From IMG/VR virus record IMGVR_UViG_3300032334_001259, positions 186,001 to 250,000 of that record: a stretch of DNA of 64,000 nt, one strand, 5' to 3'. The notes under the pieces were generated by a model that searched no databases, was not told the DNA's origin, and worked only from the letters and a program-made list of their open reading frames with translations. Of the stretch, positions 10,741-51,900 are shown piece after piece; positions within the stretch are counted from its first letter, which is position 1, and the number at the start of each line of letters is the position of its first letter. A program made the position numbers and the translations under genes.

Positions 10741-11671
10741 TTTAGTTGATATAAGTGATCTTGATGTAATATTCTTAAGCTATAAAGAAACCAACGCTGA
10801 TAGCAATTGGTCTTATGTTCGTAGTTTTGTTCCGTGGGCAAAACGTGTTCATGGTATAGAAGGAAGTGATGCAGCCCACAAAGCTGCCGCATCAAAAAGT
10901 GAAACAGAGAGATTTATTCTTATTGATGGTGATAATCAACCAAACCCAGAATTTTTTAATCAACAATTAAGACTTAATGATGATAATAGTGAATGTGTAT
11001 TTCGTTGGCGTGCAAAAAATCACATTAATGGGTTATGCTATGGTAATGGTGGGTTGAGCAGTTGGACTAAAACTTTTGTTAATAATATGCGAACCCATGA
11101 AGCAAGTGACGGAAATACAGAAACAGCCGTTGAGTTCTGTTATTTTCAAAATTATTGGGCTATGCATGATGTTTGGAGTATAACATCACCAAATGGTAGT
11201 CCACAACAAGCATGGCAAGCAGGATTTCGTGAAGGTGTTAAACTTTGTCTTGACCGTGGTCGCCGTGTAAATCCAGAAGAATTTGAAAAGGCAACCTGGT
11301 TAGGCAATCGCACAAATCTTGTTATTTGGTGTAGTATCGGTGCTGATGTTGAATATGGCAAATATGCAATGTTGGGTGCTCGTCAAGGTGCTTTTAAAAC
11401 CATGTTCGATGATGATTGGGACTATACAGAAGTTCGTGATTTTGATAAGTTAGAAAATATTTGGAATGATAGTTTAGAATATAACGACAAAGAAAGTGAA
11501 ACGTTTGCAAGAATGTTGCGTAAACGTTTAAATCTTGATATAGTGACTTTTAATGCTGAACAAAGTAAATGGTTTAAAAATCATCAACGTACATATCAAA
11601 ATATTGATATTATGTTACCAGAAAGAGATGTAGGAAATGTCATCCGAAGTGCTGCTAGACAACTCTGGTGA
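10733..11671 (+). CDS. Glycosyltransferase-like protein (GT-A)
   Basis: Start moved to ATG 10733 (MSNLVD); DVIFLSY, AHKAAA, FILIDGDN (DxD), AGFREGVKL. Confidence 0.6.
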   Translation: MSNLVDISDLDVIFLSYKETNADSNWSYVRSFVPWAKRVHGIEGSDAAHKAAASKSETERFILIDGDNQPNPEFFNQQLRLNDDNSECVFRWRAKNHINGLCYGNGGLSSWTKTFVNNMRTHEASDGNTETAVEFCYFQNYWAMHDVWSITSPNGSPQQAWQAGFREGVKLCLDRGRRVNPEEFEKATWLGNRTNLVIWCSIGADVEYGKYAMLGARQGAFKTMFDDDWDYTEVRDFDKLENIWNDSLEYNDKESETFARMLRKRLNLDIVTFNAEQSKWFKNHQRTYQNIDIMLPERDVGNVIRSAARQLW

Positions 11672-13076
11672 TACTGCCACAGTTAACGAAGATAACACAT
11701 TAAAAAGTGATTTTCTAACCGCCGCTGAAAAAATGCAGCAGAAGTTAGGTAATTCACTTTGCCTTTCCAAATGGATGCAAACGAGTTTGCACCTAACAAC
11801 TGGTCATACTAATAGTTGCTACCATCCACCACTACATAGGATAAATGCAGATGATCTCACCGATAACCCCAGTGCACTCCACAACACTGAATTTAAAAAA
11901 ACGCAAAGACAGCGAATGCTACTTGGAGAACGCCCAGAAGAATGTAGTTACTGTTGGCGAGTTGAAGCCACAGGAAACTTATCAGATAGACATTACAGAT
12001 CGGGAGAACCTTGGGCTGCTAATAAGTATAATGAGATTCTTATTCAAGACCCCTTAACTTGGAATGTAAATCCAGCTTATGTAGAAGTAAATTTTAGTAA
12101 TGTTTGTAACTTACAATGTAGCTATTGTTCGCCACAATTTAGTAGTGCGTGGCAAAAGGAAATAAATGAAAACGGTGCTTATCCTACTTCTAATTCCCAC
12201 AATAGTCCTTCTTACTTTACTACTGATCGTAGAGTTATACCAAACAGGGAAAGTAATGTTTATGTTGATGCGTTCTGGCGATGGTGGCCAGAACTCTACC
12301 CAAACCTAAAACATTTTCGTATGACAGGCGGTGAACCACTGCTTGACAAAAACACTTATCGTGTATTTGATTATGTATTAGACCATCCTAAAAAAGATTT
12401 ACATCTAAACGTAACAAGTAACTTTAGCCAAGATGAATATGTATTTGAAAAATATCTCACTTATGTAAAGCATATGTGTGGTAATAAAGTGTTAGAGCAT
12501 TTCATGCAGTTTGTCTCTATTGATGGTTATGGTGAACGTGCTGAATATGGTCGTCATGGTCTTGATTTTAAACTTATGCAATCTAACGTTGAGAAGTTCT
12601 TAACAGATATACCAGGTCGTAATAGCGTAACTTTTATCATTACGATGAATGTGCTAAACATCACAAGTCTTAAAGAATTGATGCAATGGATACTTGAACT
12701 TCGTAACAAATACAATACAACGTATCAACGTGTTTGGTTTGATACTCCAATTCTTCGTGAACCTAAATGGCAATGTGTTGATATACTGCCAGAAAGTTAT
12801 GCTTGGTTCTTACAGAATATTGTTGATTGGATGAAGCCACAGACAGAAACGGTTGATACAAGATTTAATGGTTTTAAAGATTATGAAATAACTAAATTAC
12901 AACGTGTTGTAGATTGGATGCGTGAACATCACCGTGAAGATAATAAAGCTATGGCAGATTTTTATAAATTTTTTGCTGAACATGATAGCCGCCGCAAAAC
13001 TAATTTTTTACAAACCTTTCCAGAAATGGTAGAATGGTGGGATAATTGCAAATATTGGGCAGATAATGCGAAGTAA
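11637..13076 (+). CDS. Radical SAM protein 1 with N-terminal SPASM/twitch-like Cys cluster
   Basis: CNLQCSYC, TGGEP; N-terminal CLSKW...SCYHP...CSYCW. Confidence 0.9.
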   Translation: MSSEVLLDNSGDTATVNEDNTLKSDFLTAAEKMQQKLGNSLCLSKWMQTSLHLTTGHTNSCYHPPLHRINADDLTDNPSALHNTEFKKTQRQRMLLGERPEECSYCWRVEATGNLSDRHYRSGEPWAANKYNEILIQDPLTWNVNPAYVEVNFSNVCNLQCSYCSPQFSSAWQKEINENGAYPTSNSHNSPSYFTTDRRVIPNRESNVYVDAFWRWWPELYPNLKHFRMTGGEPLLDKNTYRVFDYVLDHPKKDLHLNVTSNFSQDEYVFEKYLTYVKHMCGNKVLEHFMQFVSIDGYGERAEYGRHGLDFKLMQSNVEKFLTDIPGRNSVTFIITMNVLNITSLKELMQWILELRNKYNTTYQRVWFDTPILREPKWQCVDILPESYAWFLQNIVDWMKPQTETVDTRFNGFKDYEITKLQRVVDWMREHHREDNKAMADFYKFFAEHDSRRKTNFLQTFPEMVEWWDNCKYWADNAK

Positions 13077-14424
13077 AAAACCAGAAGAATCTTTTTTAGA
13101 ATATAAACAACGTGTGTTAGATACAAAAAGTAAATCTTTTTGTGGTGCTAAATGGTATAATGCAACTATATGGCTTGGTAGTGGACAAACGACAAGTTGT
13201 CACCACCCACTTCCGCATACTATACCTGTAAATGAATTAGAAAAAAATCCAAGTGTATTGCATAACACATATCAAAAGAAGACTGAACGTGCAATGATGC
13301 AACAGGGGGAACGTCCAAAAGGATGTGAATATTGTTGGCGTATTGAGGATAACAGTGATATAGCTATCAGTGACCGTCCTTACAAAAGTATGATATATAG
13401 TGAAGAAGAATTGAACGAGGCATTTCGTCTACCATTTGATACTGACGTAAATCTTCGCACTTTGGAGATAGCCTTTGATAGAACTTGTAACTTTGCTTGT
13501 AGCTATTGTAATCCCGCTTTTAGTACTACTTGGGTTAAAGACATTAAAGTTAATGGACCATACGTTGACCTTGTTAGCGATGGTCGCAATCATTTTACCC
13601 ATATACATGATTCTTCTCAGCTATATAGTTTCTCTGATACGAATCCATATGTAGAAGCATTCTTTAAATGGTGGGAAACTGACCTATATAAGACACTACG
13701 TGAATTACGTATAACTGGTGGTGAACCACTTATGAGTGGACATACATGGAAGTTGCTTGATTGGTTTAAAAACAATCGTGGTAAAAGCCGAACGAAACTT
13801 GCAATTAACAGCAATCTTGGTATTGAACGAGAAAAACTTGTAGAGTTTGTAGATAATATTCGTGAATTGCCACACGTTGAAGTTTATACAAGTTGTGAAG
13901 CATTTAAAGAGCAAGCTGAATATATTCGTGATGGTTTAAATTATTATCAATGGTTTGATAATTTAGTTTACCTACAAAATAGTGGTGCTGTTAAACAATT
14001 ACACGTAATGGCAACTATTAATGGATTATGTTTGCCATCATTACCAAATTTTCTTGAACACATGATGGATTTTAAAATGGGTTATGGTCGTGATAGTTTA
14101 ACTGTTACACTTAACATTTTGCGTTTCCCAAGTTTTCAAAGTCCAATTGTAATGCCATATGGTATCAAAGAAGAATGCGCTGTTGCTCTTGAAAAGTTTT
14201 TAGAACGACATGAACATGGAAAATATTTGCATCAAATGGAAATTGAACATGTTAAACGTTTAATTCAATATTTACGTACAACAACAACTCCACATGAAGG
14301 TGCAAGTCACATTGATATTTTAGAAAAAGATTTTAAAAACTTCTATGAACAATACGACAAACGCCGTGGTAAAGATTTTATTGAAACTTTTCCTGATTTA
14401 GAAGATTGGTATAATGGCATATAA
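13066..14424 (+). CDS. Radical SAM protein 2
   Basis: CNFACSYC, TGGEP; N-terminal CGAKW...SCHHP...CEYCW. Confidence 0.9.
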   Translation: MRSKKPEESFLEYKQRVLDTKSKSFCGAKWYNATIWLGSGQTTSCHHPLPHTIPVNELEKNPSVLHNTYQKKTERAMMQQGERPKGCEYCWRIEDNSDIAISDRPYKSMIYSEEELNEAFRLPFDTDVNLRTLEIAFDRTCNFACSYCNPAFSTTWVKDIKVNGPYVDLVSDGRNHFTHIHDSSQLYSFSDTNPYVEAFFKWWETDLYKTLRELRITGGEPLMSGHTWKLLDWFKNNRGKSRTKLAINSNLGIEREKLVEFVDNIRELPHVEVYTSCEAFKEQAEYIRDGLNYYQWFDNLVYLQNSGAVKQLHVMATINGLCLPSLPNFLEHMMDFKMGYGRDSLTVTLNILRFPSFQSPIVMPYGIKEECAVALEKFLERHEHGKYLHQMEIEHVKRLIQYLRTTTTPHEGASHIDILEKDFKNFYEQYDKRRGKDFIETFPDLEDWYNGI

Positions 14425-15685
14425 CTATAACGGCAAAGAACCAATTAAAATTGCTGTTGACGATTTAACAGATTCTCAAAAACATTTAATCTTTGAGAAC
14501 AAATCATTTTGTATGTATCCTTGGATTCATCTTCATGCATTTCCAACAGGAGAAGCATATCCGTGTTGTAATACCGAGATGCCTGAACTTGTAGGTAACA
14601 CTCGCCATAATACAATAGAAGAAATTTGGCATGGATCGGCAATGCAAGATGTTCGTAATAAGATGCTTGCTGGTGAACCAGTAAAAGGTTGCAGTCGTTG
14701 TTATGAGCAAGAAGACAATGGTTTTTTCAGTATGCGCATGAGTGCTAATAAACACTTTGGACATCATATTGCACTGACAGACAATCCCACACCGCCAATG
14801 AAAATGATTTATTGGGATATACGTTTTAGTAATTTATGCAATCTTCGTTGTCGCAGTTGTGGTCATATCTTTAGTTCAAATTGGTATGATGATCAAGTTA
14901 AACTTGCAGGTGAAGAGTGGGGAAAAAATAACAAACGTATCAATTTTGCTGGTCGCAATGAAGATGATATTTGGAATCAGCTTGAACCGCAGATTGATAA
15001 TCTTGAACAAGTATATTTTGCTGGCGGTGAACCACTTATCATGGAAGAACATTACCGTTTGCTTAAAGAACTTATTAAGCGTGGTCGTCACGATGTTCGT
15101 CTCATTTACAATACAAACTTTACACAAACAGTTTATAAGAAAACAAATGTGTTTGAACTTTGGCGTGAGTTTAAAAGTGTAAGTGTTGGAGCAAGTTTAG
15201 ACGCAATGGGTAAACACGCCGAGTATATTCGCAAGAATACGGTATGGGCAGATGTTGAACGCAATCGTGAAGAAATGTTAAAGATATGTCCACGTGTAGA
15301 TTTTTATATAAGTCCAACATTAAGTGTTATGAATGCATTACACTTACCTACTTTTCATCGTGATTGGGTAGAACGTGGATTTTTAAAACCGCAAGATTTA
15401 AATATTAATATATTGCAAGATCCACCTCATTATCGTATTGATATACTGCCATTTCAATATAAAGTTGATGTGCAAGAACTTTATTTGGAGCATATTGATT
15501 GGCTTAAACCCCAAGATTACCTGAAACGAGCAACTGCTGGATTTGAAAGTGCAATTAACTTTATGATGGCAGATGATAAGAGTAATTTGCTAGAAAAGTT
15601 TATTACTAAGACAGTTCAACTAGATAAGATACGAAATGAAAATATTTTGGAATCCATTCCAGAAATGAGATTTATTCATGAATAA
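14414..15685 (+). CDS. Radical SAM protein 3
   Basis: CNLRCRSC, AGGEP; N-terminal FCMYPW...PCC...CSRC. Confidence 0.9.
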   Translation: MAYNYNGKEPIKIAVDDLTDSQKHLIFENKSFCMYPWIHLHAFPTGEAYPCCNTEMPELVGNTRHNTIEEIWHGSAMQDVRNKMLAGEPVKGCSRCYEQEDNGFFSMRMSANKHFGHHIALTDNPTPPMKMIYWDIRFSNLCNLRCRSCGHIFSSNWYDDQVKLAGEEWGKNNKRINFAGRNEDDIWNQLEPQIDNLEQVYFAGGEPLIMEEHYRLLKELIKRGRHDVRLIYNTNFTQTVYKKTNVFELWREFKSVSVGASLDAMGKHAEYIRKNTVWADVERNREEMLKICPRVDFYISPTLSVMNALHLPTFHRDWVERGFLKPQDLNINILQDPPHYRIDILPFQYKVDVQELYLEHIDWLKPQDYLKRATAGFESAINFMMADDKSNLLEKFITKTVQLDKIRNENILESIPEMRFIHE

Positions 15686-16841
15686 TTTTTGTGTATTACC
15701 ATTTACTAGTATTGAAGCAGATCCAATGGGTAAATGTAAGGTATGTTGTTTATCAAAAACTACTATACCAAATATTGACCTTAAAACTAATACATTAACA
15801 GAAGCATTTAACAGTGATTACATGCGTAATTTAAGACAACAATTTTTACAAGATGAAAAACCAAGTGAATGTGAACGTTGTTGGACAGAAGAAGCAAGTG
15901 GACGCACTAGTAAACGTATGCACAGCACTATGCGACTTCAAAAAATTTTGCAAAATAAATCTTTTACTAAAGATACTGATGGTGAACTTATTTTTCTTGA
16001 TCTTAAACTTGGAAATATTTGTAATTTGAAGTGTAGAATATGTGGTAGCTTTAGTAGCAGTAAATGGGCACAGGAAGAAATTGATATATTTAAAAATAAC
16101 AATACAGCACGTGAAAATCTTGAAAATGGACGTTGGCCACGTGAAGCAAACAATTTTTGGAAAGATTTAGCAGATTTATTATCAAATACAAAATATTTTG
16201 AATTTACGGGTGGCGAACCATTTCTTATTGACGAACACTTTACATTATTAGAAATTGCAGTCAAGATGGGTTATGCAAAAGATATTGAATTGCATTACAA
16301 TACTAATACTACTACTTTTCCTAAACGTGGTTTAGAATTGTGGCCAAATTTTAAATTGGTTGAAATTGCCCTATCAATTGATGATATGGGTAAGCGGTTT
16401 GAATATCAAAGATTTGGAACAAAATGGGAAACTACTCTTGAAAATTTAGAACGTTTTAGACAATTAAGACAAAACAATAAAAATATAAAGCTACAACTGT
16501 GTTTAACTGTTAATGTACTAAATGTTTACTATCTTGATGAAATTTGTAAATGGATACCAAAACAAAAATTTAATTATGTTTATTTTAACGTATTGCATGA
16601 TGCCTGGTATTTTAGTATCAAACATTTTACTCAACGTGCTAAGGATTTAGTTAATGAAAAATATAAAAATTATACTGGTTTTTACGCTGATGAAATAAAA
16701 AATTTAATAACATTTATGAATCAGGGTGTTAGTAGTGATGGAACTGATTTGGTAAGAATACTTAAGCAAAGTGACATACAGCGTAATCAAAAGTTTAGCA
16801 ATTATCATAGTGAGATAGCGGCGGCAATTGGTTATGAATGA
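15678..16841 (+). CDS. Radical SAM protein 4
   Basis: CNLKCRIC, TGGEP; N-terminal FCVLPF...VCC...CERC. Confidence 0.9.
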   Translation: MNNFCVLPFTSIEADPMGKCKVCCLSKTTIPNIDLKTNTLTEAFNSDYMRNLRQQFLQDEKPSECERCWTEEASGRTSKRMHSTMRLQKILQNKSFTKDTDGELIFLDLKLGNICNLKCRICGSFSSSKWAQEEIDIFKNNNTARENLENGRWPREANNFWKDLADLLSNTKYFEFTGGEPFLIDEHFTLLEIAVKMGYAKDIELHYNTNTTTFPKRGLELWPNFKLVEIALSIDDMGKRFEYQRFGTKWETTLENLERFRQLRQNNKNIKLQLCLTVNVLNVYYLDEICKWIPKQKFNYVYFNVLHDAWYFSIKHFTQRAKDLVNEKYKNYTGFYADEIKNLITFMNQGVSSDGTDLVRILKQSDIQRNQKFSNYHSEIAAAIGYE

Positions 16842-18126
16842 TTTTTGTTTGGCACCTTGGACCCACACATATATATCACCACAAGGTGAGCGTAGGTTAT
16901 GCTGTGCATCACGAGAACCCGCACAAAATTTTAAACAGTATATTGACACTGAACACGGAAATGGTGAATTTCAAGCCTTAGCACTAGAGGAATGGTGGAA
17001 TGGTGAACATATTAGAAGAATAAGAAAAGAGTGGTTATCTGGAACAATCCCAAAAGAATGTGAAGTATGCGATAAAAAGTTACTTAATACTTCTGTTTAT
17101 CGTGATTACTTTGCTCATCTCTTCGGTCATTTACGGAAGGATATTATTTCTTCTACTGACCATGAAGGTTATACAACCATAGAACCAATATCCTGGGATT
17201 ATCGTTATAGTAATGTATGCAACTTTAAGTGCCGTATGTGTGGTGACATGTTAAGTAGTGCATGGGAAGTTGAAGTGCGTAAAAATGATATGGTTGACAT
17301 AAAAAATCCAAAGAACTATTGGATGCAACCAAAGAATCGCCATGCTATTCGTGATTTTACTCGTGATGTAGTAATACCAGAATTTCGTGAAGCTATAGAA
17401 AACAAAACTGTGCGTGAAATCTATTGGGTAGGCGGTGAACCACTATTGTATGACGAACACTGGACTTTCATGCGCCGCATCGTTGAATTAGGTTATGCAG
17501 ATCAGGTCCGTGTGCGGTATAATACGAATTTAAGTTATACTAAAGATAAAGATGGAACTCTTTGGGATTTATTACACCACTTTCCACATTGGGAAATATG
17601 TGCAAGTTTAGATGGAACAGGAGATATTGGTGAGTATATTAGAAGTGGTCTTAATTATAATGATTGGTTGGATAATTTTAAACAAGGAATCCAACATCAG
17701 CGACATGTTCGCCAAATGCGTATTGATTTTACTCTTACTTTGCCTGGTTTATATGATCTGGCCAATATTATTAATCTTGTTGATTCTCTTAATGTTTCCC
17801 TATTAAGTAAAGTAGTATTTGCTTTTAGCCCTGATATATTATTAAGTCCATTAGCTTTACCTCGTAATATATTAATACCACTTATAGAAAATATACAAGA
17901 AAATATAAAATCAAAAATAACTTACAGAACTCAAAGTTTGTGGGATGTATTGGAACATCTTAAAACTCGTCAAACTTTTGAAGAAGAATTTCCTGACAAT
18001 TATAAACAAGAGGCAAAACGAGGTAAGGCGCATCTTTTAAAATTGGAATCTATTCGTAAAGATGCTAAAATAAAATTAGAAGATATCTTAACTGGTGATA
18101 CCTTAGATTGGTGGAATAGTATATGA
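16834..18126 (+). CDS. Radical SAM protein 5
   Basis: CNFKCRMC, VGGEP; N-terminal FCLAPW...LCC...CEVC; start moved to ATG 16834. Confidence 0.9.
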   Translation: MNDFCLAPWTHTYISPQGERRLCCASREPAQNFKQYIDTEHGNGEFQALALEEWWNGEHIRRIRKEWLSGTIPKECEVCDKKLLNTSVYRDYFAHLFGHLRKDIISSTDHEGYTTIEPISWDYRYSNVCNFKCRMCGDMLSSAWEVEVRKNDMVDIKNPKNYWMQPKNRHAIRDFTRDVVIPEFREAIENKTVREIYWVGGEPLLYDEHWTFMRRIVELGYADQVRVRYNTNLSYTKDKDGTLWDLLHHFPHWEICASLDGTGDIGEYIRSGLNYNDWLDNFKQGIQHQRHVRQMRIDFTLTLPGLYDLANIINLVDSLNVSLLSKVVFAFSPDILLSPLALPRNILIPLIENIQENIKSKITYRTQSLWDVLEHLKTRQTFEEEFPDNYKQEAKRGKAHLLKLESIRKDAKIKLEDILTGDTLDWWNSI

Positions 18127-25320: not shown

Positions 25321-25346
25321 AAGGCTCCGAAAATTTTCGGAGCCTT
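25321..25346 (-). terminator. Intrinsic terminator, perfect 26-bp palindrome AAGGCTCCGAAAATTTTCGGAGCCTT
   Basis: Followed by a T-tract on the - strand, downstream of the vWA gene. Confidence 0.8.
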
Positions 25347-25372: not shown

Positions 25373-26635
25373 TTAGGCATCTTCGTAGTAAGCACTTACA
25401 CCAAATGGTGGTTCAATGGTCTTGTTATACTTGTTATGGATAATCCAAACAGTATCACAATAGTTTTCATCACCCCAAGAACCAAATGGTTCACCGTCAG
25501 TAAACACAATCAATAGCTTTGGTGAAACATCTTCGTGCTTCATCCAGTTCCAATTCACTTCAAAGTCGGTGCCACCAAAACCTTTAGGTTCATAGTTTAC
25601 AAGGTCATCACCATCAGCAGTGGTATATTCTTGTGGGTTATGGACCTGTGTATCAAAGCACCACACTTTAATCTTGTAATCATCATATGATTGCATAATA
25701 CCGTTGATTTCACCAAAGAAATTATTCAACTGTTCATTGCTGATAGAACCACTGGTATCAATGGCAACACAGACATCAATAGCTTGGTCCTTACGCATGT
25801 TAGGCAGAACAAAACCATTGCTGAAATGTTTCTTATTAGGAACAGTCCAAGTGTAATCATTCTTAACAGTGGATTGGATTTGTTGTGTAATGAGTTCACG
25901 CCAGTTGATTTTAGGTTGTGTGAGTTCATTAATCATACGCTTGACATTGCCAGGAACATTGCCAGCGCCAGCAGATTGTGCGGCGGCAAGCATTGCTTCC
26001 TTAAACTCATCCTTAATCTTTTGACGTTCTTCTTGTGAAAGTACGGGACGACCTTTGCCATCCTTCTCACCATCACCTTCGCCGCCACCGCCCTTGCCAT
26101 CCTTGTCAGCATCAAGATGGTCATCAAGCAATTGGTCAAGCAAATCTTCAATGTTGATTTTGGTAGCGTTCTTGATCAAGTCATCATAAACTTGTTCAAA
26201 ATTCCATTCATCGTATTTGCGATCATGCAATACGGGAACAACAGTAATTTTTGCACCAAGGTTATACTTAATACAATCAGCATTAACAACATAATCCATT
26301 GCGATGTTGGCAATGTCACGTTGTTTGCCAATACCACGGTTGATATGGTCATATGCACAATGAAGCAATTCGTGACAAAACAAAAACATCATTTGGTTTG
26401 TAGGCAACTTGAGGATAAAGTCACTGTTGTAATAAAAGTGACGACCGTCAGTTGCGGCAGTGGTCAGCCAGCTATCGGCATTAACCAATTTTAGTCGCAT
26501 GGCAAGATTGCCGAAAAAAGGTTGTTTAAGAACCAGTGCAATACGAGCCTTGAGAATTGCTTGACGTGCGTTGTAATCTACCGTAGCATCAATAGTATCG
26601 GACAGTTTGCCACCACCCTGTTTAACTTTAGCCAT
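25373..26635 (-). CDS. Metallopeptidase-like plus vWA domain protein (DUF2201-like), partner of the MoxR ATPase
   Basis: TAATDG, HELLH (HEXXH), MIDAS DTSGS, GGTDF, FTDG; AGGAG SD before ATG 26635. Confidence 0.85.
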   Translation of the reverse strand: MAKVKQGGGKLSDTIDATVDYNARQAILKARIALVLKQPFFGNLAMRLKLVNADSWLTTAATDGRHFYYNSDFILKLPTNQMMFLFCHELLHCAYDHINRGIGKQRDIANIAMDYVVNADCIKYNLGAKITVVPVLHDRKYDEWNFEQVYDDLIKNATKINIEDLLDQLLDDHLDADKDGKGGGGEGDGEKDGKGRPVLSQEERQKIKDEFKEAMLAAAQSAGAGNVPGNVKRMINELTQPKINWRELITQQIQSTVKNDYTWTVPNKKHFSNGFVLPNMRKDQAIDVCVAIDTSGSISNEQLNNFFGEINGIMQSYDDYKIKVWCFDTQVHNPQEYTTADGDDLVNYEPKGFGGTDFEVNWNWMKHEDVSPKLLIVFTDGEPFGSWGDENYCDTVWIIHNKYNKTIEPPFGVSAYYEDA

Positions 26636-26659
26636 AATTAATCTCCTATCCATATATAC

Positions 26660-26687
26660 ATAATACCACAGAATTATATTATGTCAA
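26660..26687 (-). promoter_or_regulatory. Early promoter TTGACA-16-TATTAT
   Basis: Same architecture as the promoters at 27985, 28278 and 29087. Confidence 0.7.
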
Positions 26688-26690
26688 GAG

Positions 26691-26801
26691 AAAAAATAGG
26701 GGGGAAGTGTTGCGGCACTACCCCCCTAACCGTAGGAAAAATCACACTTTTTTCCTACCTTATCTCGCCCTCACTGTGATGGAGAACGATAGGGGCGAGA
26801 T
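26691..26801 (-). ncRNA. Candidate 3'UTR-derived structured RNA: three hairpins ending in an intrinsic terminator, with an anti-SD loop
   Basis: Stems ATCTCGCCC/GGGCGAGAT, GTAGGAAAAA/TTTTTCCTAC and TAGGGGGG/CCCCCCTA followed by T6. Confidence 0.5.
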
Positions 26802-27928
26802 TAATCACGCACTGCCGCAAGGATGAAGTCACCGTTTTTAGCATGATATTCCTTATAGTGCTTCATCTTGCTAGTCTTCATTGGCAACTTGTAGTTACGG
26901 AGAATAGTAGCAAGCATCATAACTTGTAATTCCGTATCCATGTTGTCAAGGAAGAAGCGGAACACGTTGTCAAGTTCATCGTGCCAAGCGGTATTCTCGT
27001 TGTCTTTCATACGTTCACCACCACGACGATCATAGCTATCCTTGAGTTCATAGCAACATGAAACCGTCAGCGAATACTTTGCACCAATGTCTTTCGCTTT
27101 GAGTTCCTTAACCTTACCGTTAAGAATATCGGTAGGATTAGGCATCTGGCTTGCTACCTTACGATGTGCGGCAAACTTAAGTGCAACACCTTCACCAACT
27201 GTACCAGACACAAGGTCATTCAGTTCAGTATCTACAAGGTCTTCTTGCAAGAGATCGCTAACAAACGACCACGAACGAGGCGTAGCAAACGATGCACCAC
27301 TTTGGCGAGGATCAAAGTTGAACAAATCATTCTTGTTGCAAGTTACATAAGCAACAACGTCAGGATTGATAGCATTGTTCAATGCCCAATCATTCCACGA
27401 CTCGAAGTCAACACGCAAGTTCAAGTGAACAAAACGGTTGGCAAGTGGCGATGGCATACGATACACAACACCACGGTCAGTGTCACGGTTACCAGCGGCA
27501 ACGATAACAACATTGTCAGGAAGTTCATACGTGCCAACACGACGATTAAGAACAAGCTGATAAGCGGCAGCTTGTGTTGCTGGTGCAGCAGAGTTCATTT
27601 CGTCAAGGAAAAGAACCACAACAGGATACTTGGCAGCTTCTTCTGCTGTAGGCAGATCGGGTGGAGCATTCCACATGGCATTGCCAACGGTTGGGTTGTA
27701 GTAAAGAACACCTTTAAGATCGGAAGGGTCCATAAGTGCAAGACGCAAGTCATACAGCTTGCCGCCCATGCTTTCACAGATATCGGCAACAAGTTCGGAC
27801 TTGCCAATACCAGGTGCGCCCCACAAGAAGATAGGACGTTTACGCTTCATACATACCATAATTTCACGCTTTGCAGAAGCGAGAGTAACGGTGCGCACTT
27901 CGGAAAGTGCCTCATTTGGTTTAGCCAT
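26801..27928 (-). CDS. MoxR-like AAA+ ATPase
   Basis: Walker A GAPGIGKS, Walker B LFLDE, AAGNR, PLANRF, TPRSW. Confidence 0.9.
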   Translation of the reverse strand: MAKPNEALSEVRTVTLASAKREIMVCMKRKRPIFLWGAPGIGKSELVADICESMGGKLYDLRLALMDPSDLKGVLYYNPTVGNAMWNAPPDLPTAEEAAKYPVVVLFLDEMNSAAPATQAAAYQLVLNRRVGTYELPDNVVIVAAGNRDTDRGVVYRMPSPLANRFVHLNLRVDFESWNDWALNNAINPDVVAYVTCNKNDLFNFDPRQSGASFATPRSWSFVSDLLQEDLVDTELNDLVSGTVGEGVALKFAAHRKVASQMPNPTDILNGKVKELKAKDIGAKYSLTVSCCYELKDSYDRRGGERMKDNENTAWHDELDNVFRFFLDNMDTELQVMMLATILRNYKLPMKTSKMKHYKEYHAKNGDFILAAVRD

Positions 27929-28250: not shown

Positions 28251-28278
28251 ATATTACCACAGGATTAGGGGTTGTCAA
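28251..28278 (-). promoter_or_regulatory. Early promoter TTGACA-16-TAATAT with conserved leader
   Basis: GTTATAGTCAATTGATGGAGAA lies downstream. Confidence 0.75.
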
Positions 28279-28922
28279 GCACTTTTTTCAAGACGAACAT
28301 AATGTAAACGGGTTACATTTTTGTCATCATGTTTATAGATACGTGCGGTCAAGCTGATTTTCTCGTTATTTTCCAAGCGGTTAGCATGTGGAAAACTTAC
28401 AAGATTTCCGTCAATTTCAGCCGTATGATACCATTTACCATAATTATGGCTATAAACGGCACTTACAATTGTTACGGTTGCCTTTAACCCATCACCAATT
28501 TGTCCAATATGACGGCTGTTTTCGCCAATTTGTGCAATCTTTTCAACGGCTTGCTCACGCTTTACAGCGTTATTATAGGAACTAGGAACGCTGGCAATAA
28601 CCGCCAAGTTACGGTAATCGTCAGTTTTAAATTCTTTTTGTTCTGTTAAAAGAACGCAAGTTTTCCAGTATTCTTGTAATGTGCCAGCAATAAGTTCAAT
28701 CATCTTGCTGTCAAGATATTCACAAATTTGTTCAGCAAATTCAATATCTTGCGGTAAAATTTTAAAGTTTTCCATTTCTGGATTAAGAAATTCACGCATA
28801 AGTGCGGCATTGCTTAATTCACCCTTGGTGTTGTCAGCATCATGCCGTTTGATATAACGACCATTTGTCCGTTGTGCCGCACAAGCGGCAGACATAGCAT
28901 GTTTCAAGCCAATAGTGGTCAT
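28275..28922 (-). CDS. Hypothetical protein, possible C-terminal OB-fold
   Basis: HIGQIGD...TVTIV...ARIYKH...TRLHYV; ATGA-coupled to the upstream small ORF. Confidence 0.6.
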   Translation of the reverse strand: MTTIGLKHAMSAACAAQRTNGRYIKRHDADNTKGELSNAALMREFLNPEMENFKILPQDIEFAEQICEYLDSKMIELIAGTLQEYWKTCVLLTEQKEFKTDDYRNLAVIASVPSSYNNAVKREQAVEKIAQIGENSRHIGQIGDGLKATVTIVSAVYSHNYGKWYHTAEIDGNLVSFPHANRLENNEKISLTARIYKHDDKNVTRLHYVRLEKSA

Positions 28923-29035
28923 TTTGCACCTTTATGCTTTGGTTTACGGGTATAGCTGCCCTTGCCCTTACGGGGGGTGACAATTTTTTGACGGTATTTG
29001 GGGTCAGCCAATGACTTGGCAATAAGGCTACGCAT
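28919..29035 (-). CDS. arfA: ArfA-like (alternative ribosome-rescue factor A) 38-aa protein, absent from the ORF track
   Basis: MRSLIAKSLADPKYRQKIVTPRKGKGSYTRKPKHKGAK; own promoter and GGAG SD; stop overlaps the next ATG. Confidence 0.7.
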   Translation of the reverse strand: MRSLIAKSLADPKYRQKIVTPRKGKGSYTRKPKHKGAK

Positions 29036-29059
29036 CGCTAGTTCTCCATCAATTATGCT

Positions 29060-29087
29060 ATAATATCATATAATTATGCCTTGTCAA
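29060..29087 (-). promoter_or_regulatory. Early promoter TTGACA-16-TATTAT for the ArfA-like gene
   Basis: Followed by ATTGATGGAGAATAGCG-type leader (TTGATGGAGAACTAGCG) and ATG 29035. Confidence 0.75.
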
Positions 29088-30477: not shown

Positions 30478-30679
30478 TTTTAACACTTCCTTTTACCATA
30501 TCAAGCAATGAATAATATTCACCACGTAATTCAATTACACTTAACCAACCAACGATAGCTACAATACTGATTACAGTTCTGGTAGTATCAGTGCCCCAAT
30601 AGTGGACTGTATCATAAACACAAAGTGTTACAACTGCCCACGGAAGAATATTATCAATAATTTTAATTACTTTATGCAT
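30467..30679 (-). CDS. Small two-helix membrane protein
   Basis: GGAG SD before ATG 30679; two hydrophobic segments. Confidence 0.5.
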   Translation of the reverse strand: MHKVIKIIDNILPWAVVTLCVYDTVHYWGTDTTRTVISIVAIVGWLSVIELRGEYYSLLDMVKGSVKNES

Positions 30680-31670
30680 AGGATTGCTCCATAAGAGGTT
30701 TAGCCAAAATATCGGCAATGGGTTGCACATTTTCACTTAACTTGACAAGTTCCCACTTACTACAAAACTTAATAAGATGGGTGCCAATTTGACGATTGCT
30801 CTTGGGCTTTACTTGCATAAGTTCAGCATCAATAGCATCACGTATATCCTGTGGCTGTGCAGTTAAATCCACAAGAACACGATTTTCTTCATAACGGTCA
30901 AGCACACGATGTTCTACACCTTCATGGTCAGTCCAACGTTGTAACATCATATTATTCCATGCCCAACCACGTTTATCACGGTCAGCAAATGCTTCTACAA
31001 GACCAACTTTTTTAGCACTGCCTTTGGTGCGAACACCAGGATATGCAGTCATAATGTTATCAGTTGGGTCACCACGCATACATTTTTCAAACAACACAAA
31101 CTTTGGATCACCAACAGTCTTGTGTTCTTTGGTTTTATTATCAACAACTGGTTTACCATTATCATCAAAATATCCATCAGTTGTAATATAATGGTTAACT
31201 AAACCATTGTAAATGCTGACGTTTTTTTCAAGTAATTGATGAAAGTCACTGTCATTGCTTAAGATGATGTGTTCATCTTGCGGATGTAATGCAATCCAAC
31301 GTGCAATAATATCATCTGCTTCTGCACGTTCAACTCTAATAACACTACAGTTTGTCTTTTCATTTACCCATGAGGTAAAATCGCCATAGGCTTTCCAAAA
31401 CTCTGCATCTTCTTCTGCTTCACGTACTGTCATTTTACCCTTAATAACTGCACGGTTTGCTTTGTATGTGAGTTTATGATCCTTACGCCAACTACGAGCC
31501 TCAAGTGCAAAAATAACATGGTCAGGCTTGTGCAAACGATTTACCTTTTGGATCACATTAAACATAATGTGCAAGGCAAGCCCAATCTTTTGCCACGTAT
31601 CAGTTCCACGATTGGTGGAATGACGTGCACGTGCAAACAGGTTAGCTGTATCTACAAGAAGATATTTCAT
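30672..31670 (-). CDS. rnh: T4-type RNase H / 5'-3' exonuclease (FEN family)
   Basis: LVDTAN, EADDIIA, SNDSDFHQL, GDPTDNI. Confidence 0.88.
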   Translation of the reverse strand: MKYLLVDTANLFARARHSTNRGTDTWQKIGLALHIMFNVIQKVNRLHKPDHVIFALEARSWRKDHKLTYKANRAVIKGKMTVREAEEDAEFWKAYGDFTSWVNEKTNCSVIRVERAEADDIIARWIALHPQDEHIILSNDSDFHQLLEKNVSIYNGLVNHYITTDGYFDDNGKPVVDNKTKEHKTVGDPKFVLFEKCMRGDPTDNIMTAYPGVRTKGSAKKVGLVEAFADRDKRGWAWNNMMLQRWTDHEGVEHRVLDRYEENRVLVDLTAQPQDIRDAIDAELMQVKPKSNRQIGTHLIKFCSKWELVKLSENVQPIADILAKPLMEQSYA

Positions 31671-35582: not shown

Positions 35583-36419
35583 TTATAAGTCAATTATTTC
35601 TGCAGTACCACCACCAATTTTATATCTTGGTTGTAGTTCACCAGATTTTCTCCATACCATGTAACTACTTTTTAATGGTTTAATTTCAAAATTGTCCAAA
35701 ACAAAACCTAACATAGTAAGTTCATTTATTACATGTTGATAATCAATGACGCTTAAATTATTTTCTATATTAGCTTGTTGCGCCCATACTTGGTCATTAG
35801 GTAAAAAATTAAAAACCCAAATACCACCTTCATAAAGCAAATCATAAACTTGTTTGCTTATATCAATAATATAATTTTCGTCAGCCTGTATAAATTCACT
35901 AAAACAATATACTATCCCAAATGATTTTTGAGGAAGAGATAACATATTATTATCAGGTATTTCATATTTTCTTAAACGACGATTTGCATAAAATGGATTG
36001 TTTAATGATGCTGCAGCTTCAATGCAAATATCATAATATCTATCTGCGATGTAGAAAGGTTCTGCAGATACACTAAATGGTAGAAATTGTCCACGACCTG
36101 GAAATAATTCTAAAGTAGGAACATTATTTGCGATATATTTTAATAATAAACTTGATAGATTAGTTACATCATATTCATTAAATTTGTTTGAATCAAGAAA
36201 AATTCTTCGTGACTCTAAACTTTGACCTTTCAATTTATTAACATAAACAGTTGTATTGTTTTTTAATATTGTTAAATCTTTTTCCAATCCTATTTCAAGT
36301 TTTTTTATTAATGTATCATATAAATCTGCAACTTCATTAAAGTATGTAGAATAGTTTTGAAAAACTTTTTTTGATTCTTTTAAAGAATTAAGGTGATTTT
36401 GTTTTTCTAATAGGTTCAT
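35583..36419 (-). CDS. Class I SAM-dependent methyltransferase-like protein
   Basis: LELFPGRG (motif I-like), LPQKSFGIVYC, LYEGGIWVF. Confidence 0.55.
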   Translation of the reverse strand: MNLLEKQNHLNSLKESKKVFQNYSTYFNEVADLYDTLIKKLEIGLEKDLTILKNNTTVYVNKLKGQSLESRRIFLDSNKFNEYDVTNLSSLLLKYIANNVPTLELFPGRGQFLPFSVSAEPFYIADRYYDICIEAAASLNNPFYANRRLRKYEIPDNNMLSLPQKSFGIVYCFSEFIQADENYIIDISKQVYDLLYEGGIWVFNFLPNDQVWAQQANIENNLSVIDYQHVINELTMLGFVLDNFEIKPLKSSYMVWRKSGELQPRYKIGGGTAEIIDL

Positions 36420-39082
36420 TAAATAAACTCAAATAAATTGGTAAAAGTATTGCTTATATTAGTTCTGTTAGTTATATCCCAACCTAACACACCAAGCAAG
36501 TTTTCTACTTTCTGACTTACAATTGTGTCTTCCATTTCATCACTATCAAATGGCATATCTTTAAACCATTGCGGAATACGTGTTTCATCTGTAGGATAAC
36601 CAATACTTGTTAATTTAAGTGGATTATCTTTTAGCTTACACACAATAGTTTTCATACCGTCAACGATTTCAATACTGCGAGTATCACCATGCATGCGACG
36701 AAGATTATTCCAATTGAGAGCGGCACGAACGTGACCTGGCATATTAGCACGACCTTCACGGCGTTCTGCTTCACCATAGAATGTTAATTTATTAACACGT
36801 TTTGGTGTTCCCTTTTCCCAACTTGGTAAGTTTTTAAACTTATATTTGAAATCACGAATTTCTTCAACAAGTGTTTCTTGGTCAACACCATCAAGTGTTT
36901 TTTTAAGAATGTCAGCAAGAAAGTCCTGAACAAGTTTTGGTGTATCACTGCGTTTTAAGTCTAAACCCATTGCTTTAAGTTTGCCAGATTTTCCTTCAAC
37001 ATCGAGACGTTTGTTTTCAAGGTCATAAATCAATACTGCATATCGTTTCTTTGTAATAAACAAACCTTTACTTGCAACCAATTCACGACCACCCTTAATG
37101 ATTTCACCAAGTTCTGGTGTAGTATGAAATGCTTCATACATAAACTTTGGAAACGTAAGGTTAACTTGTTCACCAATACTGTCATAAAGTTGGACACATA
37201 TCTCTTTGTTCCACTCCATGCGACCAGCTTCAACATCATCTTTGATAACTGGCCATGCAGAGAAATAAACAGAGTCAGTATCACCATAGATTATTGCCTT
37301 ACCAACATGGTCATGCTCACCAGTAATAAGTTGATTAACTGTAGCATCCATGTGCTTTGCAATCGTACGACCACATAGCGTAGTGCTTTGTCCAATACGT
37401 TGGTCAAAGAAACGACAACCTGCGTTAAGAATAGCACCGTATAGACTGTTCAAGTTAATCTTTTTAACCAACTGACGTTTATCCCAGAAAGCAATTTCTT
37501 TTGGGTCTTTGGCTTCTTTCTTTTTAGCTTGCAATTCTTTACGTTCACTATACCAACGTTCAAGCAAACTTGGCACAACACCTTGGCGTTCAAGGTTAAA
37601 AATAGTTCCATTGGCACTTAATGCCCATGGAGCATAATTGTCAAAAATCATATCATAAATTTGTGCTGCACTGTAAACTTCACTACTACCATTTTCCCAA
37701 TCAATGGTAATTTCTGTGCCAATTTCACGATTCATTACAGCAGTGTATTCTAATGTTGCAAACAAACCTTCCCATGCACCTGCAAATGATTTGCCTTCAT
37801 CTATGCGTTGTTTAAGTAGTGCTTCTGTCATAATAGGACGAAGTTGTCCAACGATGGTTTCTGGTCCCATATTGAGTGCACGAATAACGGATGGATACAG
37901 TGAGTTAATATCAATAGCACCAATCCAATCATGCAATCCTTTCTTTGGATATGCAACATAAGCACCAGCAACCTGTGTATTGACTTCTTCTTCACGTGAA
38001 CGGCGACTTGGAACCACTAACCCACGACGATGCGCTTCATTGATAATTGCCTGGTCTGTCACTGCAACAGCACCCATTGTAGTCTGCAACAACACGGTAT
38101 TATCATGCGCAATTTCGTTTGCCAAATCAAGAAAACGCAACTTTTTATCTAATTTGTTTAACAGTGCAACGTCCTGACGAGAATACTGAATAAAGGTTTC
38201 AAAGTCACGATTATATAACTGGTCAAGCGAACCTTCGTATGCTGTCTTGCGTTCATTGAGTTCGTATTCGCCAATAGCATCAAGGCTATAGGAATGGCGT
38301 TCTTCATAGGTATACTTGCGATATAGCACCATATAATCAAGATGAACACGACCTACCAAATCATAGGTATAACTGGTCTTGCCGTATTTTTCATATTCAC
38401 GTTCTTTAGGAAACTGATCCCATAAGCAGAAACGACGAGTATCGTCTTTGCTTAATACACGTGTAACACGATTAACGGTATATGGAATATCAAAACCTTC
38501 ACTATTCCAACCACTTAACACATCTGCGTCATCAATAAGTTCAAGGAATGTAAGTAGTAATTCACGCTCACTTTCAAACATAAATGTGTTTTCAAATCGT
38601 GCGCCAATCTTATTAGCTTCATCTATGCTCATTCCCTTTGGTGGCATGGCAAGTGTAATAAGTTGGTCGAGCCAATCCAAATAGATTGTTATTGCAGTGA
38701 TTCTGGTAAACGGGTCATCAGGAGTGCTGTAACCTTTTTGCGGATCAAAGTCCGTCTCAATATCGAAAAAGGCTGTTTGTAATTGTGGCGAATCTTTACC
38801 AAGATAATTTTCAGCGAGACAACGAAAAATTGGGTTGAGGTCACTTTCAAATATACGTTTACCTTTTTTTACTCCGTTTAATTCACGGCGTAAATCTTTA
38901 TTACTACGACAACTTACACGACGAACTGGGGTATCATAAATGCTGCGATGAGTGCCATTGTCATCTTCATAATAAAATTGATAGTTACAATTATACTCTT
39001 TATAAACACGTTTACCATCTACACGTTCAACAACATGAATGCGTTCTCGTGTTCTGTCATGGATGGCATCAACATAACTCAT
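36419..39082 (-). CDS. Family B DNA polymerase (T4 gp43-like)
   Basis: ExoI FDIETD, GWNSEGFD, DINSLYPS, KINLNSLYG, YGDTDS, KKRY; clamp-binding-like C-terminus TNLFEF. Confidence 0.97.
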   Translation of the reverse strand: MSYVDAIHDRTRERIHVVERVDGKRVYKEYNCNYQFYYEDDNGTHRSIYDTPVRRVSCRSNKDLRRELNGVKKGKRIFESDLNPIFRCLAENYLGKDSPQLQTAFFDIETDFDPQKGYSTPDDPFTRITAITIYLDWLDQLITLAMPPKGMSIDEANKIGARFENTFMFESERELLLTFLELIDDADVLSGWNSEGFDIPYTVNRVTRVLSKDDTRRFCLWDQFPKEREYEKYGKTSYTYDLVGRVHLDYMVLYRKYTYEERHSYSLDAIGEYELNERKTAYEGSLDQLYNRDFETFIQYSRQDVALLNKLDKKLRFLDLANEIAHDNTVLLQTTMGAVAVTDQAIINEAHRRGLVVPSRRSREEEVNTQVAGAYVAYPKKGLHDWIGAIDINSLYPSVIRALNMGPETIVGQLRPIMTEALLKQRIDEGKSFAGAWEGLFATLEYTAVMNREIGTEITIDWENGSSEVYSAAQIYDMIFDNYAPWALSANGTIFNLERQGVVPSLLERWYSERKELQAKKKEAKDPKEIAFWDKRQLVKKINLNSLYGAILNAGCRFFDQRIGQSTTLCGRTIAKHMDATVNQLITGEHDHVGKAIIYGDTDSVYFSAWPVIKDDVEAGRMEWNKEICVQLYDSIGEQVNLTFPKFMYEAFHTTPELGEIIKGGRELVASKGLFITKKRYAVLIYDLENKRLDVEGKSGKLKAMGLDLKRSDTPKLVQDFLADILKKTLDGVDQETLVEEIRDFKYKFKNLPSWEKGTPKRVNKLTFYGEAERREGRANMPGHVRAALNWNNLRRMHGDTRSIEIVDGMKTIVCKLKDNPLKLTSIGYPTDETRIPQWFKDMPFDSDEMEDTIVSQKVENLLGVLGWDITNRTNISNTFTNLFEFI

Positions 39083-48948: not shown

Positions 48949-51900
48949 TTAAACTTCACGCAAAGACAATCTACCCGTCTCATATTCTCTTGTAAATGTA
49001 TCAAGAAGTGCTTGACCACCAGCTTCTTTATAGTGTTTTACCAATATTTCATATGCTTCCGTTGGTGTATCAGCACCAACTTCAATAAATCGATCAACAG
49101 AGGTATCTCTATATAATGCAAACACTTTACTTGCATTTGCACGACCAATACGGTCTACAATTACATTAGAACGCTGTGGCTGTGGTTTTGGTTGTGGTTT
49201 TGGTTTTCTTACACCAGTTTTATAATCAGTTGGTGTTACCAGATGATATGGTCCATTACCATTACTAATATTATTTGCAATGTTGCGATAACCGCCATTA
49301 TTAAGATTTGCTAATGCACTTTCTTCACTATCGCCACGAACACGAACAAATACAAAGTTATTTGTATCACTTACAACATAGAACTCAATCTTGCCGCTAC
49401 CAACAACAACAATGTGATTTATATCTTGCTTGCCTATGGCTTGACGTGCGTTTCTGCTGCCCCAATGCAATCTACGATTACCACGATAAACAATCATATT
49501 GTTATCAAATGCATTTGCATAATAATCAGCAATTTCTGCAACTTGATCTTGTGTATATTTTGCTGGATCAAAACGTGCAATAATATGGTCATCATAATCT
49601 TCAATGCGATATGCAAGAGTATTGTAAACCTGTTCAGCATTAGGTTTGCCATCCAAACCGTTTCGCTCAATTTTTATGATTTCACCATAAAGTGATGCAA
49701 TGTTATTATCACTATAATTATATCCTATAACATTCAAGTAATTTTTAACATCTTCTCTGCTAACATTTGGTATAAGATTTTTTACAGCTTCAAATTCTAT
49801 TTCATCAGTGTTTGCTTGATTTGGATAAAGTCCTAATCTGCTATACTCACGATTCTTTAAACCATTGCCCTGCATATAAATCGTTGTGACGTAAATGTTA
49901 AAATATGGGAACTTTAACAAATATGCTTGTGTATCCATATTGCGTTCATTTAGCCAATCATATGCAAGTTTAATCATTTCATATAGTTGTTCACCATGAA
50001 CTTCTACTACTTCATCACCTAATTTAGTTTCAATTTTAGCAGTAATTTTACCTTGACCGATTGGTTTAACTGGCTCACGTGACTTACGAACTGCTTGAAC
50101 TTGACGCACCAATTCTTCTTTGTCAATATCACCAGTAACATATTTTGCAAATATATCAACTGTGCTACTGTCTTTCTTTACGCTATCTACAATAAGTTTA
50201 TAAAACTTCTTGTGATATTCTTGTTTGCTATCTTCTGGATCAGCAGCCGCAGCCATAGCACGAACATAACGTAACATTGTGTTACGGATTTCATCATACT
50301 TTTCAAAGTAATTGCCACCAGCACTACGAAACTCAATATAATTAGACTTGATGTTTACACTTACGTAACGATCACCTTTAGTTCCACTGATAATTTTGTT
50401 TACTTCTCTATTAGTTTGGTCAAGTAAACCAGCACGTGCATCATCCAATATCTTTGGTAGTGACTTACGGAAATCACGTGTTTCTGTTGCTTTATATGCT
50501 TGGTCAAACATACTCTTTGTCCAACGGCTGTTTAGTCGTTCAAAACGGTCTAATACATACTTGTCACCAAGCAACAATATAAGTTTAAGGTGATTTATAT
50601 TTGCCATAGTTTGGTCAGGAACACTAACACCAATATGGAAACCTGTTGTGCGATTAGTATAATAACGGTTACGCTTTGCCCATGTGAATACGTTATTAAG
50701 TGCTTCAAGTGCATCATCAAGTAACATTGGTGGTGATACAAGTTCTACACCGCCATCTTCAAAGTCTTCTGGACTATCTAAACTGCTATCTGGTTCAAAT
50801 ATCCAGTAATCACCACGACTTGTGCCGTGATAACCACTGCTTTCAACTGCGCTATAACCTGTTGCATTTTCAAAACTATTCACTAAATCATCATAAGTTA
50901 CATCACCTGAACTACTGCCATCAGTCATATATGGCCAATCAAGACTATCAACATTTGTTTCACGATTAATGTAACGTGCAAAACCTTGCATTGTGTCAAT
51001 TTCGTGGATTCTTAAAAAGTCTTGCCAGTTTTCTTTATCGTTTTCATTTTCCCAATTTTCACGAACAGAAGATTCGGCTTCATCTTTTTGTTCTTCGGTT
51101 ACTTCACTGTAATCATCTACGCCTACTTCATCAGCAATTGCTTGTTTCCATTCATCGCTGTTTTCATATTCATAATATTGATCACTTACATAATCGCTAA
51201 AGTTTTCATAGAATGCTTCTAATGCACGTTCTACACTGCGACGACTATTGCCATAATCACCTTCTGTAAAGAAGTCTATAATCATACGTTGGCGATCTTT
51301 GTAAGTTTCATCTGCTGGAAAATCTTCATCTTGATCATAATCTGGCTCTGGGTCTTCTTCTTCACCTTGTAGACCAGGTACATACATTTCAGTTTCAAAG
51401 CCAACACGCATTTGTTGTGCAAACTCGCTCTTGGCAAATGCTTCCAAACTCTTTGGATTCATTTTTACTTCTGCAAGGAAAGATTCTGTTAGACTTTCTT
51501 CAATGCTTTCGTTGCGTTCTGGAACTGCTACAATAGTATAACCTGGTCCCATATTATGTTCAGTTGCCCAACTTTGTGCATAACGACGAGCAGCAGTTTC
51601 ACTTGCAGCAGTAAATGTATGGTAAACACCGCCCATACTACCTACAATATTATATGTAGTTTCTCCTTGCGGTGTAGCACGATGCTGTGCAATAATTAGT
51701 GGTGGTATTGTATTGCCAGCAATATCATAACCACGCTGTATTTCCCAATCTGCATATTGTCGTTGTTGTTCTGGTTGTGGTCTTGGTTGTGGAATTAGTT
51801 GACCTTGCGCATCCCATAGATTATTGTTGTTTGGTGTTCTAATTGCAATATTTGCTAATGATAGACCACGTTGTTGTGCAAAACTTTGTGCTGCTTGACT

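Follow-up and report, generated by a model that had tools for sequence, protein, structure and literature searches.

A 38-codon ArfA-like gene with an ordinary stop codon in a 338-kb phage genome that also carries a tmRNA

Bacteria depend on ribosome rescue for survival, and the process is being explored as a target for antibiotics, yet to our knowledge hardly any work has addressed its part in phage infection. The locus described here raises the question of whether a phage can supply a ribosome-rescue factor of its own and, if so, of what kind. It was found within a 64,000-nucleotide stretch of DNA (the window), which represents bases 186001–250000 of an IMG/VR virus record. This record, the genome of a freshwater jumbo phage, comprises 338,435 bp, with terminal repeats of 123 bp and a G+C content of 35.5%. 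A preliminary description of the window had read a 38-codon ORF as an unannotated, early-expressed peptide resembling ArfA of Escherichia coli, and had proposed two possible roles for it, that of a rescue factor released from its usual regulation, which would free ribosomes stalled on mRNA cleaved in host shutoff or by toxin RNases, and that of a competitor of tmRNA tagging.

Expression signals, conservation and genome context

The ORF was identified on the minus strand with the core sequence given in the preliminary description, and the strong promoter, Shine-Dalgarno sequence and ATGA coupling that had been attributed to it were also found to be present (Table 1). The promoter is near the sigma-70 consensus, with 11 of 12 matches together with the TG of an extended -10, and codons K35–G36 of the ORF supply an AAGGTG-like Shine-Dalgarno sequence for the gene that follows. 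Some relatives possess an upstream in-frame ATG and, as this codon is ATT in the window gene, the start of the 38-aa form was taken to be the conserved start. A terminator-like hairpin at 28962–28980, within the ORF, lies on the plus strand and is antisense to the gene, and was taken as a chance occurrence. The term unannotated has to be withdrawn, as the 38-aa gene is already present in a public gene-call collection, where it has a precomputed match to the ArfA family of Pfam (PF03889).

Table 1. Features of the arfA-like locus and of related loci (window coordinates, unless a locus or the genome is named)
Feature	Position	Strand	Remarks
arfA-like CDS	28919..29035	minus	38 aa, MRSLIAKSLADPKYRQKIVTPRKGKGSYTRKPKHKGAK; true TGA, four codons past the KH motif
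Sigma-70-type promoter of arfA	29060..29087	minus	-35 TTGACA (29087-29082), 16-nt spacer ending in TG (29068-29067; extended -10), -10 TATTAT (29065-29060)
Shine-Dalgarno GGAG	29044..29047	minus	8 nt 5' of the arfA ATG (29035)
ATGA overlap	28919..28922	minus	arfA TGA (28921-28919) and p215 ATG (28922-28920); translational coupling
p215	28275..28922	minus	215-aa coupled downstream gene; phage-only family
MoxR-like AAA ATPase (375 aa), then DUF2201_N/DUF2201 protein (426 aa)	25373-27928	minus	
Strong intrinsic terminator	25321..25346	minus	11-bp stem and T-run; probably terminates the transcription unit(s) containing arfA
5'-3' exonuclease	30672-31670	minus	
DNA polymerase	36419-39082	minus	
Promoter-class sites in the window	26660, 27958, 29060, 31680, 34460, 62900	minus	
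tmRNA	genome 377-709 (L002)	minus	two-piece (permuted), alpha-type; outside the window
In-ORF intrinsic terminator of viral locus L067	3075-3097		9 pairs
In-ORF terminator or strong hairpin at the equivalent place	L003:1588-1613		also in L042, L046, L051, L057, L082 and L099

Conservation of the gene was assessed in approximately 15 related freshwater phage contigs originating from independent metagenomes. The length of 38 codons, the stop codon and the TTGACA and -10 hexamers are kept in these, with a promoter spacer that varies, while GGAG is retained in all contigs except one and the ATGA overlap in every contig with the 38-aa form. A more distant relative (L037) encodes 40 aa and does not have the overlap. 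Related phages are also present in DNA runs of lake and other freshwater metagenomes. Over the whole peptide, the 11 distinct alleles gave a mean dN of 0.06 and a mean dS of 0.59 (dN/dS of approximately 0.10), and the identity among relatives is 84–100% for the ArfA-like peptide against 61–100% for the product of p215, with the neighboring p133 also being less conserved. Purifying selection acts on the 38-aa ORF, a real gene which has its own promoter and Shine-Dalgarno sequence and ends at an ordinary stop codon.

The gene is located in a minus-strand block together with those of a 5'-3' exonuclease and the DNA polymerase, with the tail-fiber genes occurring on the opposite, plus strand. It is followed by p215, a 79-aa ORF (p79), the genes of a MoxR-like AAA ATPase and a DUF2201 protein, and a terminator, and the ATPase/DUF2201 pair is conserved 3' of arfA in all related contigs. 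Within the 24–35 kb region of the window there are five comparable promoter sites, that of arfA included, and every one is on the minus strand. Across the whole genome, the class TTGACA-N16/17-TAnnnT (-10 of at least 5/6) has 35 sites compared to 3.75 ± 1.1 in shuffled sequences, an enrichment of about nine-fold, most of these having the TG of an extended -10 (TTGACA-N16/17-(TG)TAtatT). The sites are mostly on the minus strand (29 of 35) and are clustered in blocks, one of which includes the tRNA region; the genome possesses 23 tRNA genes. Judged by its motif, this promoter class would fit transcription by the host polymerase, and an early or middle timing is plausible.

The gene coupled to arfA, p215, has 42 homologs, none of which has a Pfam domain. 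Its AF2 model (pLDDT 90.8) has a helical N-terminal domain followed by a C-terminal OB fold, with structural matches to SSB, RPA, the anticodon domain of LysRS and ExoVII, and this model suggests that the p215 product may bind nucleic acid. It was considered as a universal partner of ArfA, and this was rejected, the arfA–p215 pair being confined to this phage lineage.

Elsewhere in the window, a number of paralogous radical-SAM proteins are encoded head-to-tail on the plus strand (11637–18126), three of which (14414–18126) have the SPASM iron-sulfur domain N-terminal of the radical-SAM core, an inversion of the order normally seen. There is also a very long ORF of 2,845 aa on the minus strand (48949–57486).

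Relationship of the peptide to ArfA

The proposed kinship with ArfA was borne out by profile comparison, in which PF03889 matched the 38-aa peptide at 37.4 bits (gathering cut-off 25.5, E 1.7e-9). This match covers only positions 18–44 of the 44 in the profile, with positions 1–17 being unmatched. When the whole 338-kb genome was searched in six frames with the same profile, a single place was found (35.3 bits, E 3.3e-9), and the low E-values at the level of the protein and of the six-frame genome indicate that the match is not due to chance. A phmmer search of PDB sequences recovered six ArfA chains (E ~3e-5, aligned residues 5–35), with 16 of 30 aligned positions identical to E. coli ArfA by manual count on the PDB-chain alignment; the string of E. 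coli ArfA that the preliminary description had quoted agrees with these chains. ArfA was the only family listed by hmmscan against Pfam at E-values up to 1, with neither BrfA nor a further rescue-peptide family appearing, and a search of the peptide against NCBIfam gave no match. The sole PHROGs match was to phrog_37108, of unknown function, and is restricted to the C-terminal module. Megablast against phages returned nothing, and distant blastn matched the exonuclease gene only. It can be stated with high confidence that the 38-aa ORF is a translated gene of the ArfA family.

To map the elements of the peptide, the PDB-chain alignment was compared with the structural descriptions of ArfA (PMC8012679; PMC5378476), with the E. 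coli protein (YhdL; PF03889; PDB 5MDV, 5MGP, 5U4I, 5H5U, and 5U9F) serving as the reference system. Both proteins share the channel module KGKGSYxRKxKH with its KH motif, the DP turn, an aromatic residue at the position of F25 and the RQ(R/K)(V/I) strand that is added to the beta-sheet of RF2. The decoding-centre helix is retained, with I5–K13 corresponding to E. coli I16–L24. At the level of the alignment, Y14 is the equivalent of F25, whose aromatic ring packs on the strands of RF2, and Q16-K17-I18-V19 that of Q27–E30, the strand which augments the RF2 sheet. The channel module R22–H34, RKGKGSYTRKPKH, corresponds to E. coli K33–H45, with K33–H34 representing the KH motif K44–H45, and is followed by four more residues. 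The peptide reaches about the ordered extent of ArfA in cryo-EM maps, which ends at residues 46–48 in the structures (PMC8012679).

Conservation among 66 non-redundant relatives extends beyond the basic tail to A6, L9, Y/F14 (91%), R15, R/K17, I/V18 and V19 (90%). The equivalents of these positions, from A6 to V19, lie in E. coli ArfA within the helix and the strand in contact with the decoding centre and with RF2 (PMC8012679; PMC5378476). H34 of the KH motif is retained in just 40% of the same 66 relatives.

The phage peptide also differs from E. coli ArfA in a number of respects. It has 38 aa compared to an ORF of 72 aa and an active form of about 55 aa in E. coli, and the phage gene possesses neither the RNase III hairpin, nor the terminator, nor the hydrophobic tail, having a true stop codon instead. 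It is phage-borne, has a strong promoter of its own and is coupled to an OB-fold gene. E. coli residues 1–11, including T7, K8 and I11, have no counterpart, as merely M1–L4 precede the helix, and positions of the RF2-activating minidomain are changed (A18 to K7, L19 to S8 and L24 to K13), such that the N-terminal minidomain of E. coli (aa 2–16, I11, A18 and the L19/L24 patch) was not recognized in the phage peptide. In E. coli, folding of the minidomain is coupled to the opening of RF2, and the A18T substitution keeps RF2 binding and abolishes release (PMC5378476; PMC8012679). E. coli ArfA shortened to residues 1–40 is inactive (PMC8012679); at the level of the alignment, the channel module of the phage peptide extends beyond this point and is long enough.

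A predicted complex of the peptide with E. coli RF2 scored 0.33, the mark being 0.34, and was counted neither for nor against an interaction. ArfA/RF2 pairs are species-specific.

The basic tails that sense the empty channel in BrfA of Bacillus, ArfT of Francisella and the C-termini of SmpB and ArfB are alike in kind, with BrfA also having a KH motif and adding a strand to RF2 (PMC8012679). However, past the basic tail, a sequence relationship of these proteins to the phage peptide is undetectable.

Two designs of viral arfA genes

A search of 1.84 billion representative proteins (E ≤ 1e-3) identified 36 relatives of 35–91 aa, and a narrow peptide pattern recovered 86 viral loci as well as 10 bacterial ones, the latter in genomes or MAGs. 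Such genes appear in two designs. Those informally grouped here as stop-type encode 36–50 aa, have their stop codon 5–12 codons past GSY, are free of hairpins and often overlap the next start. The window gene, with 10 residues past GSY and its ATGA overlap, fits this group, other members of which are the rest of the window clade, Caulobacter phage Cr30, Brevundimonas phage Kikimora (36 aa) and several forms of 36–37 aa. The second design, terminator-type, has a G+C-rich hairpin and a T-run inside the ORF, directly 3' of the RKGK codons (Table 1), and locus L059 of IMG/VR is also among the viral loci of this non-stop kind. These genes show no variation over the coding part and the stem, and both conservation and frame collapse right after the T-run, although the nominal ORFs extend a further 26–84 unconserved codons. 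RNA folding of the segments past GSY gave a mean z of -0.4 for the short class (57 unique segments) and -1.8 for the extended class (20 unique segments).

The terminator-type genes share the core of the window peptide and its short N-terminus, which in the L067 group is just as short, and differ in the in-ORF terminator and a variable tail. Their predicted truncated product has about 38–40 aa, the length at which the window gene is ended by its stop codon. Bacterial arfA and brfA are expressed from non-stop mRNA and are hence repressed by trans-translation, and this tmRNA-feedback design is known solely for the back-up rescue factors ArfA and BrfA (PMC8012679). By analogy, the terminator-type viral genes are apparently of the non-stop type and should be under tmRNA feedback.

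The non-stop mRNA with an in-ORF hairpin or terminator that is typical of bacterial arfA was not found for the window gene or its clade, an in-frame TGA being present in all relatives. As had been proposed, a real stop directly follows the functional core, the TGA occurring just past the ordered part, and no internal hairpin was detected when the mRNA of the window gene was folded (z +0.62). As the transcript has a stop codon and must extend into the overlapping gene that follows, synthesis of the peptide would proceed regardless of tmRNA. With a real stop, a hairpin-free mRNA and in-ORF terminators at the same place in relatives, the window ArfA probably escapes tmRNA feedback. This is the best-supported part of the interpretation, and the earlier reading of the gene as unregulated by tmRNA was well founded.

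Phage ArfA as such is not new, having already been annotated in Citromicrobium phage vB_CbaS-RXM and Brevundimonas phage Kikimora, and phage arfA genes have been named, with no functional test, in two articles (PMC8953757; PMC12753301). The ArfA of Kikimora, of RXM (g10) and of pelagiphage HTVC027P (gp30) share the subfamily motif (R)NPxAKxL..P.YRQ+(I/V)V+P+KGKGSY.RK with the window peptide. That of Kikimora, a jumbo phage, is likewise of the minimal stop type (37.3 bits). In contrast, RXM g10 (60 aa) has a strong hairpin past the core (z -2.67) and a longer tail and so looks to be of the non-stop type, and HTVC027P gp30 lies under the Pfam cut-off with 20.2 bits. For this distant homolog, high expression was reported at 3 hpi and a second time late (PMC12753301); these are the sole timing data, and serve as a distant precedent for the window gene. 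What is new here is a minimal, stop-terminated and N-terminally short phage ArfA that occurs alongside a phage tmRNA. In a literature search of incomplete coverage, no paper was found that analyzed both designs or tested a phage ArfA.

The tblastn matches of the peptide were mostly to phages of Alphaproteobacteria, and the subfamily was seen in phages of Caulobacter, Brevundimonas, Citromicrobium and Pelagibacter, hosts which reportedly lack arfA. In a survey of 2,376 alphaproteobacterial genomes, none had arfA (PMC11633108). In our six-frame search, ArfA above the cut-off was identified in 8 of 401 genomes of the class to which one alphaproteobacterial MAG belongs. This sporadic pattern of alphaproteobacterial arfA would suit carriage by mobile elements.

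The phage tmRNA and the role of the peptide

Outside the window, an alpha-type tmRNA was identified in the phage genome with ARAGORN and Rfam (108 bits to RF01849 and 100 bits to RF04321). It is canonical-looking, with an ARAGORN tag, ANDNAPVEMRLAA, that ends in ...LAA. A domain search of the 338-kb genome found no SmpB, RF-1 or PCRF domain, so the phage must use the SmpB and release factors of its host. The presence of a tmRNA together with ArfA favors a gain in rescue capacity over the competition with tmRNA tagging that had been offered as an alternative, and the phage's own tmRNA argues against the latter. The alpha_tmRNA matches of Kikimora and Ralstonia phage RsoM2USA, of 40 and 37 bits, respectively, are under the cut-off of 50, and no co-occurrence of tmRNA with ArfA is claimed from them.

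The closest relatives of the phage DNA polymerase are those of the jumbo phages Phosso of Sinorhizobium and Atu_ph07 of Agrobacterium (46–49% identity), and these, along with the alpha-type tmRNA, hint at an alphaproteobacterial host. An identical 4.6-kb contig was found in a MAG labeled as Gammaproteobacteria. The assignment of a host through this MAG failed, since it has an ordinary one-piece tmRNA and the phage polymerase is absent there.

We consider it reasonably probable, from sequence comparison, that the phage peptide is a functional, minimal member of the ArfA family that rescues ribosomes via RF2. Host RNA polymerase would transcribe arfA from the strong sigma-70-type promoter as part of the replication, or early-middle, block. 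Where a ribosome has stalled at the 3' end of a truncated mRNA, the basic C-terminal module would enter its empty mRNA channel, and Y14 and the strand Q16–V19 would dock host RF2 by beta-strand addition, as F25 and Q27–E30 do in E. coli. RF2 would then hydrolyze the peptidyl-tRNA, allowing the ribosome to be recycled with no tagging. Unlike that of bacterial ArfA and of the terminator-bearing viral relatives, synthesis of the peptide would be independent of tmRNA activity, and the peptide and the phage tmRNA together would provide a greater capacity for ribosome rescue during infection.

Rescue is the likeliest role because the positions facing RF2 are conserved, which would be superfluous in a peptide that only plugged the channel; because the feedback design of the terminator-type relatives with short N-termini suits a back-up rescue factor only; and because RF2 activation by BrfA relies on an N-terminus of unrelated sequence (PMC8012679), which points to this part of the protein being evolutionarily plastic. 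Counting against it are the profile match limited to Pfam positions 18–44, the low retention of H34 and the species specificity of ArfA/RF2 pairs. Activation of RF2 by the phage peptide is nevertheless something that we only infer, as the minidomain is not of the E. coli type. It is here that a blocker or decoy of rescue has to be weighed, where the peptide would plug the empty channel and hold RF2 closed in the manner of ArfA(A18T), or would exclude tmRNA-SmpB, with host rescue or tagging being inhibited and not supplied. Such a role would agree with the absence of the minidomain, which in E. coli turns RF2 binding into release (PMC5378476), with the loss of A18, L19 and L24, and with the inhibition of trans-translation by an SmpB-tail peptide (PMC8012679). 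However, the ribosomes trapped in this way would cost the phage its own translation and a competitor for the channel would antagonize its own tmRNA, while the tmRNA-feedback design of the short relatives and the opening of RF2 by BrfA also count against a blocker, which we therefore think unlikely.

The same N-terminal difference could mean that the peptide does rescue ribosomes, but with another partner or by another route, working with RF1 as well as RF2 or activating the release factor without a minidomain of the ArfA type. The occurrence of the subfamily in phages of hosts that reportedly lack arfA (the survey cited above) would be in keeping with this, and there is a precedent in ArfT of Francisella, which is reported to recruit RF1 as well as RF2 (PMC6299226). 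Against it, the F25-equivalent aromatic residue and the beta-strand responsible for RF2 specificity are conserved and nothing indicates RF1, making this improbable. It is far less credible still, and in our opinion very improbable, that the small ORF serves mainly as a leader that loads ribosomes for the OB-fold protein p215 and that its likeness to ArfA is vestigial. The ATGA overlap retained in the 38-aa contigs and the Shine-Dalgarno-like codons K35–G36 would be expected of such a leader, but the purifying selection acts over the entire peptide, the peptide is better conserved than p215, and its family occurs in many other viruses which do not have p215.

If rescue via RF2 is taken as the role, a constitutive ArfA of 38 residues would be the smallest natural rescue peptide to recruit a release factor and would define minimal requirements for RF2 activation. 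More tentatively, and with considerable doubt, phages may carry a minimal, tmRNA-blind ArfA class of their own, free of the minidomain, into hosts that mostly lack arfA, and in this phage, with its tmRNA, both arms of rescue would be seized early. Without the minidomain, such a class would have to open the release factor in another, simpler manner, and the seizure of both arms would ensure a supply of free ribosomes at a time when host mRNA is being broken down or RNases of a defence are at work. The two viral designs, stop-type and terminator-type, amount to a natural experiment on why ArfA synthesis is normally tied to tmRNA. The occurrence of ArfA in phages whose hosts reportedly lack arfA, and beside a phage tmRNA, further suggests an adjustment by phages of how much rescue proceeds with tagging and how much without. 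A peptide that blocked rescue instead would represent a natural inhibitor of an antibiotic target.

ArfA-like ORFs were also observed in a number of other phage genomes. In Caulobacter phage Cr30 (L008:947-1099) there is an unannotated ArfA-like ORF which overlaps the next start, with an RNA ligase gene two genes off, and in RsoM2USA (L006:1435-1623) an ArfA-like ORF is unannotated, an ORF on the opposite strand being annotated there instead. Enterococcus phage VRE9_2 (L007:920-1066, phrog_37108) encodes a 48-aa peptide which ends in KKGKGSYKRKPKHKG and whose N-terminal half is unrelated. This module is all that the Enterococcus phage peptides share with the window peptide (PF03889 at 23.5 bits, below the cut-off), and its presence may represent an independent use of the channel-binding module of ArfA by phages of Gram-positive hosts.
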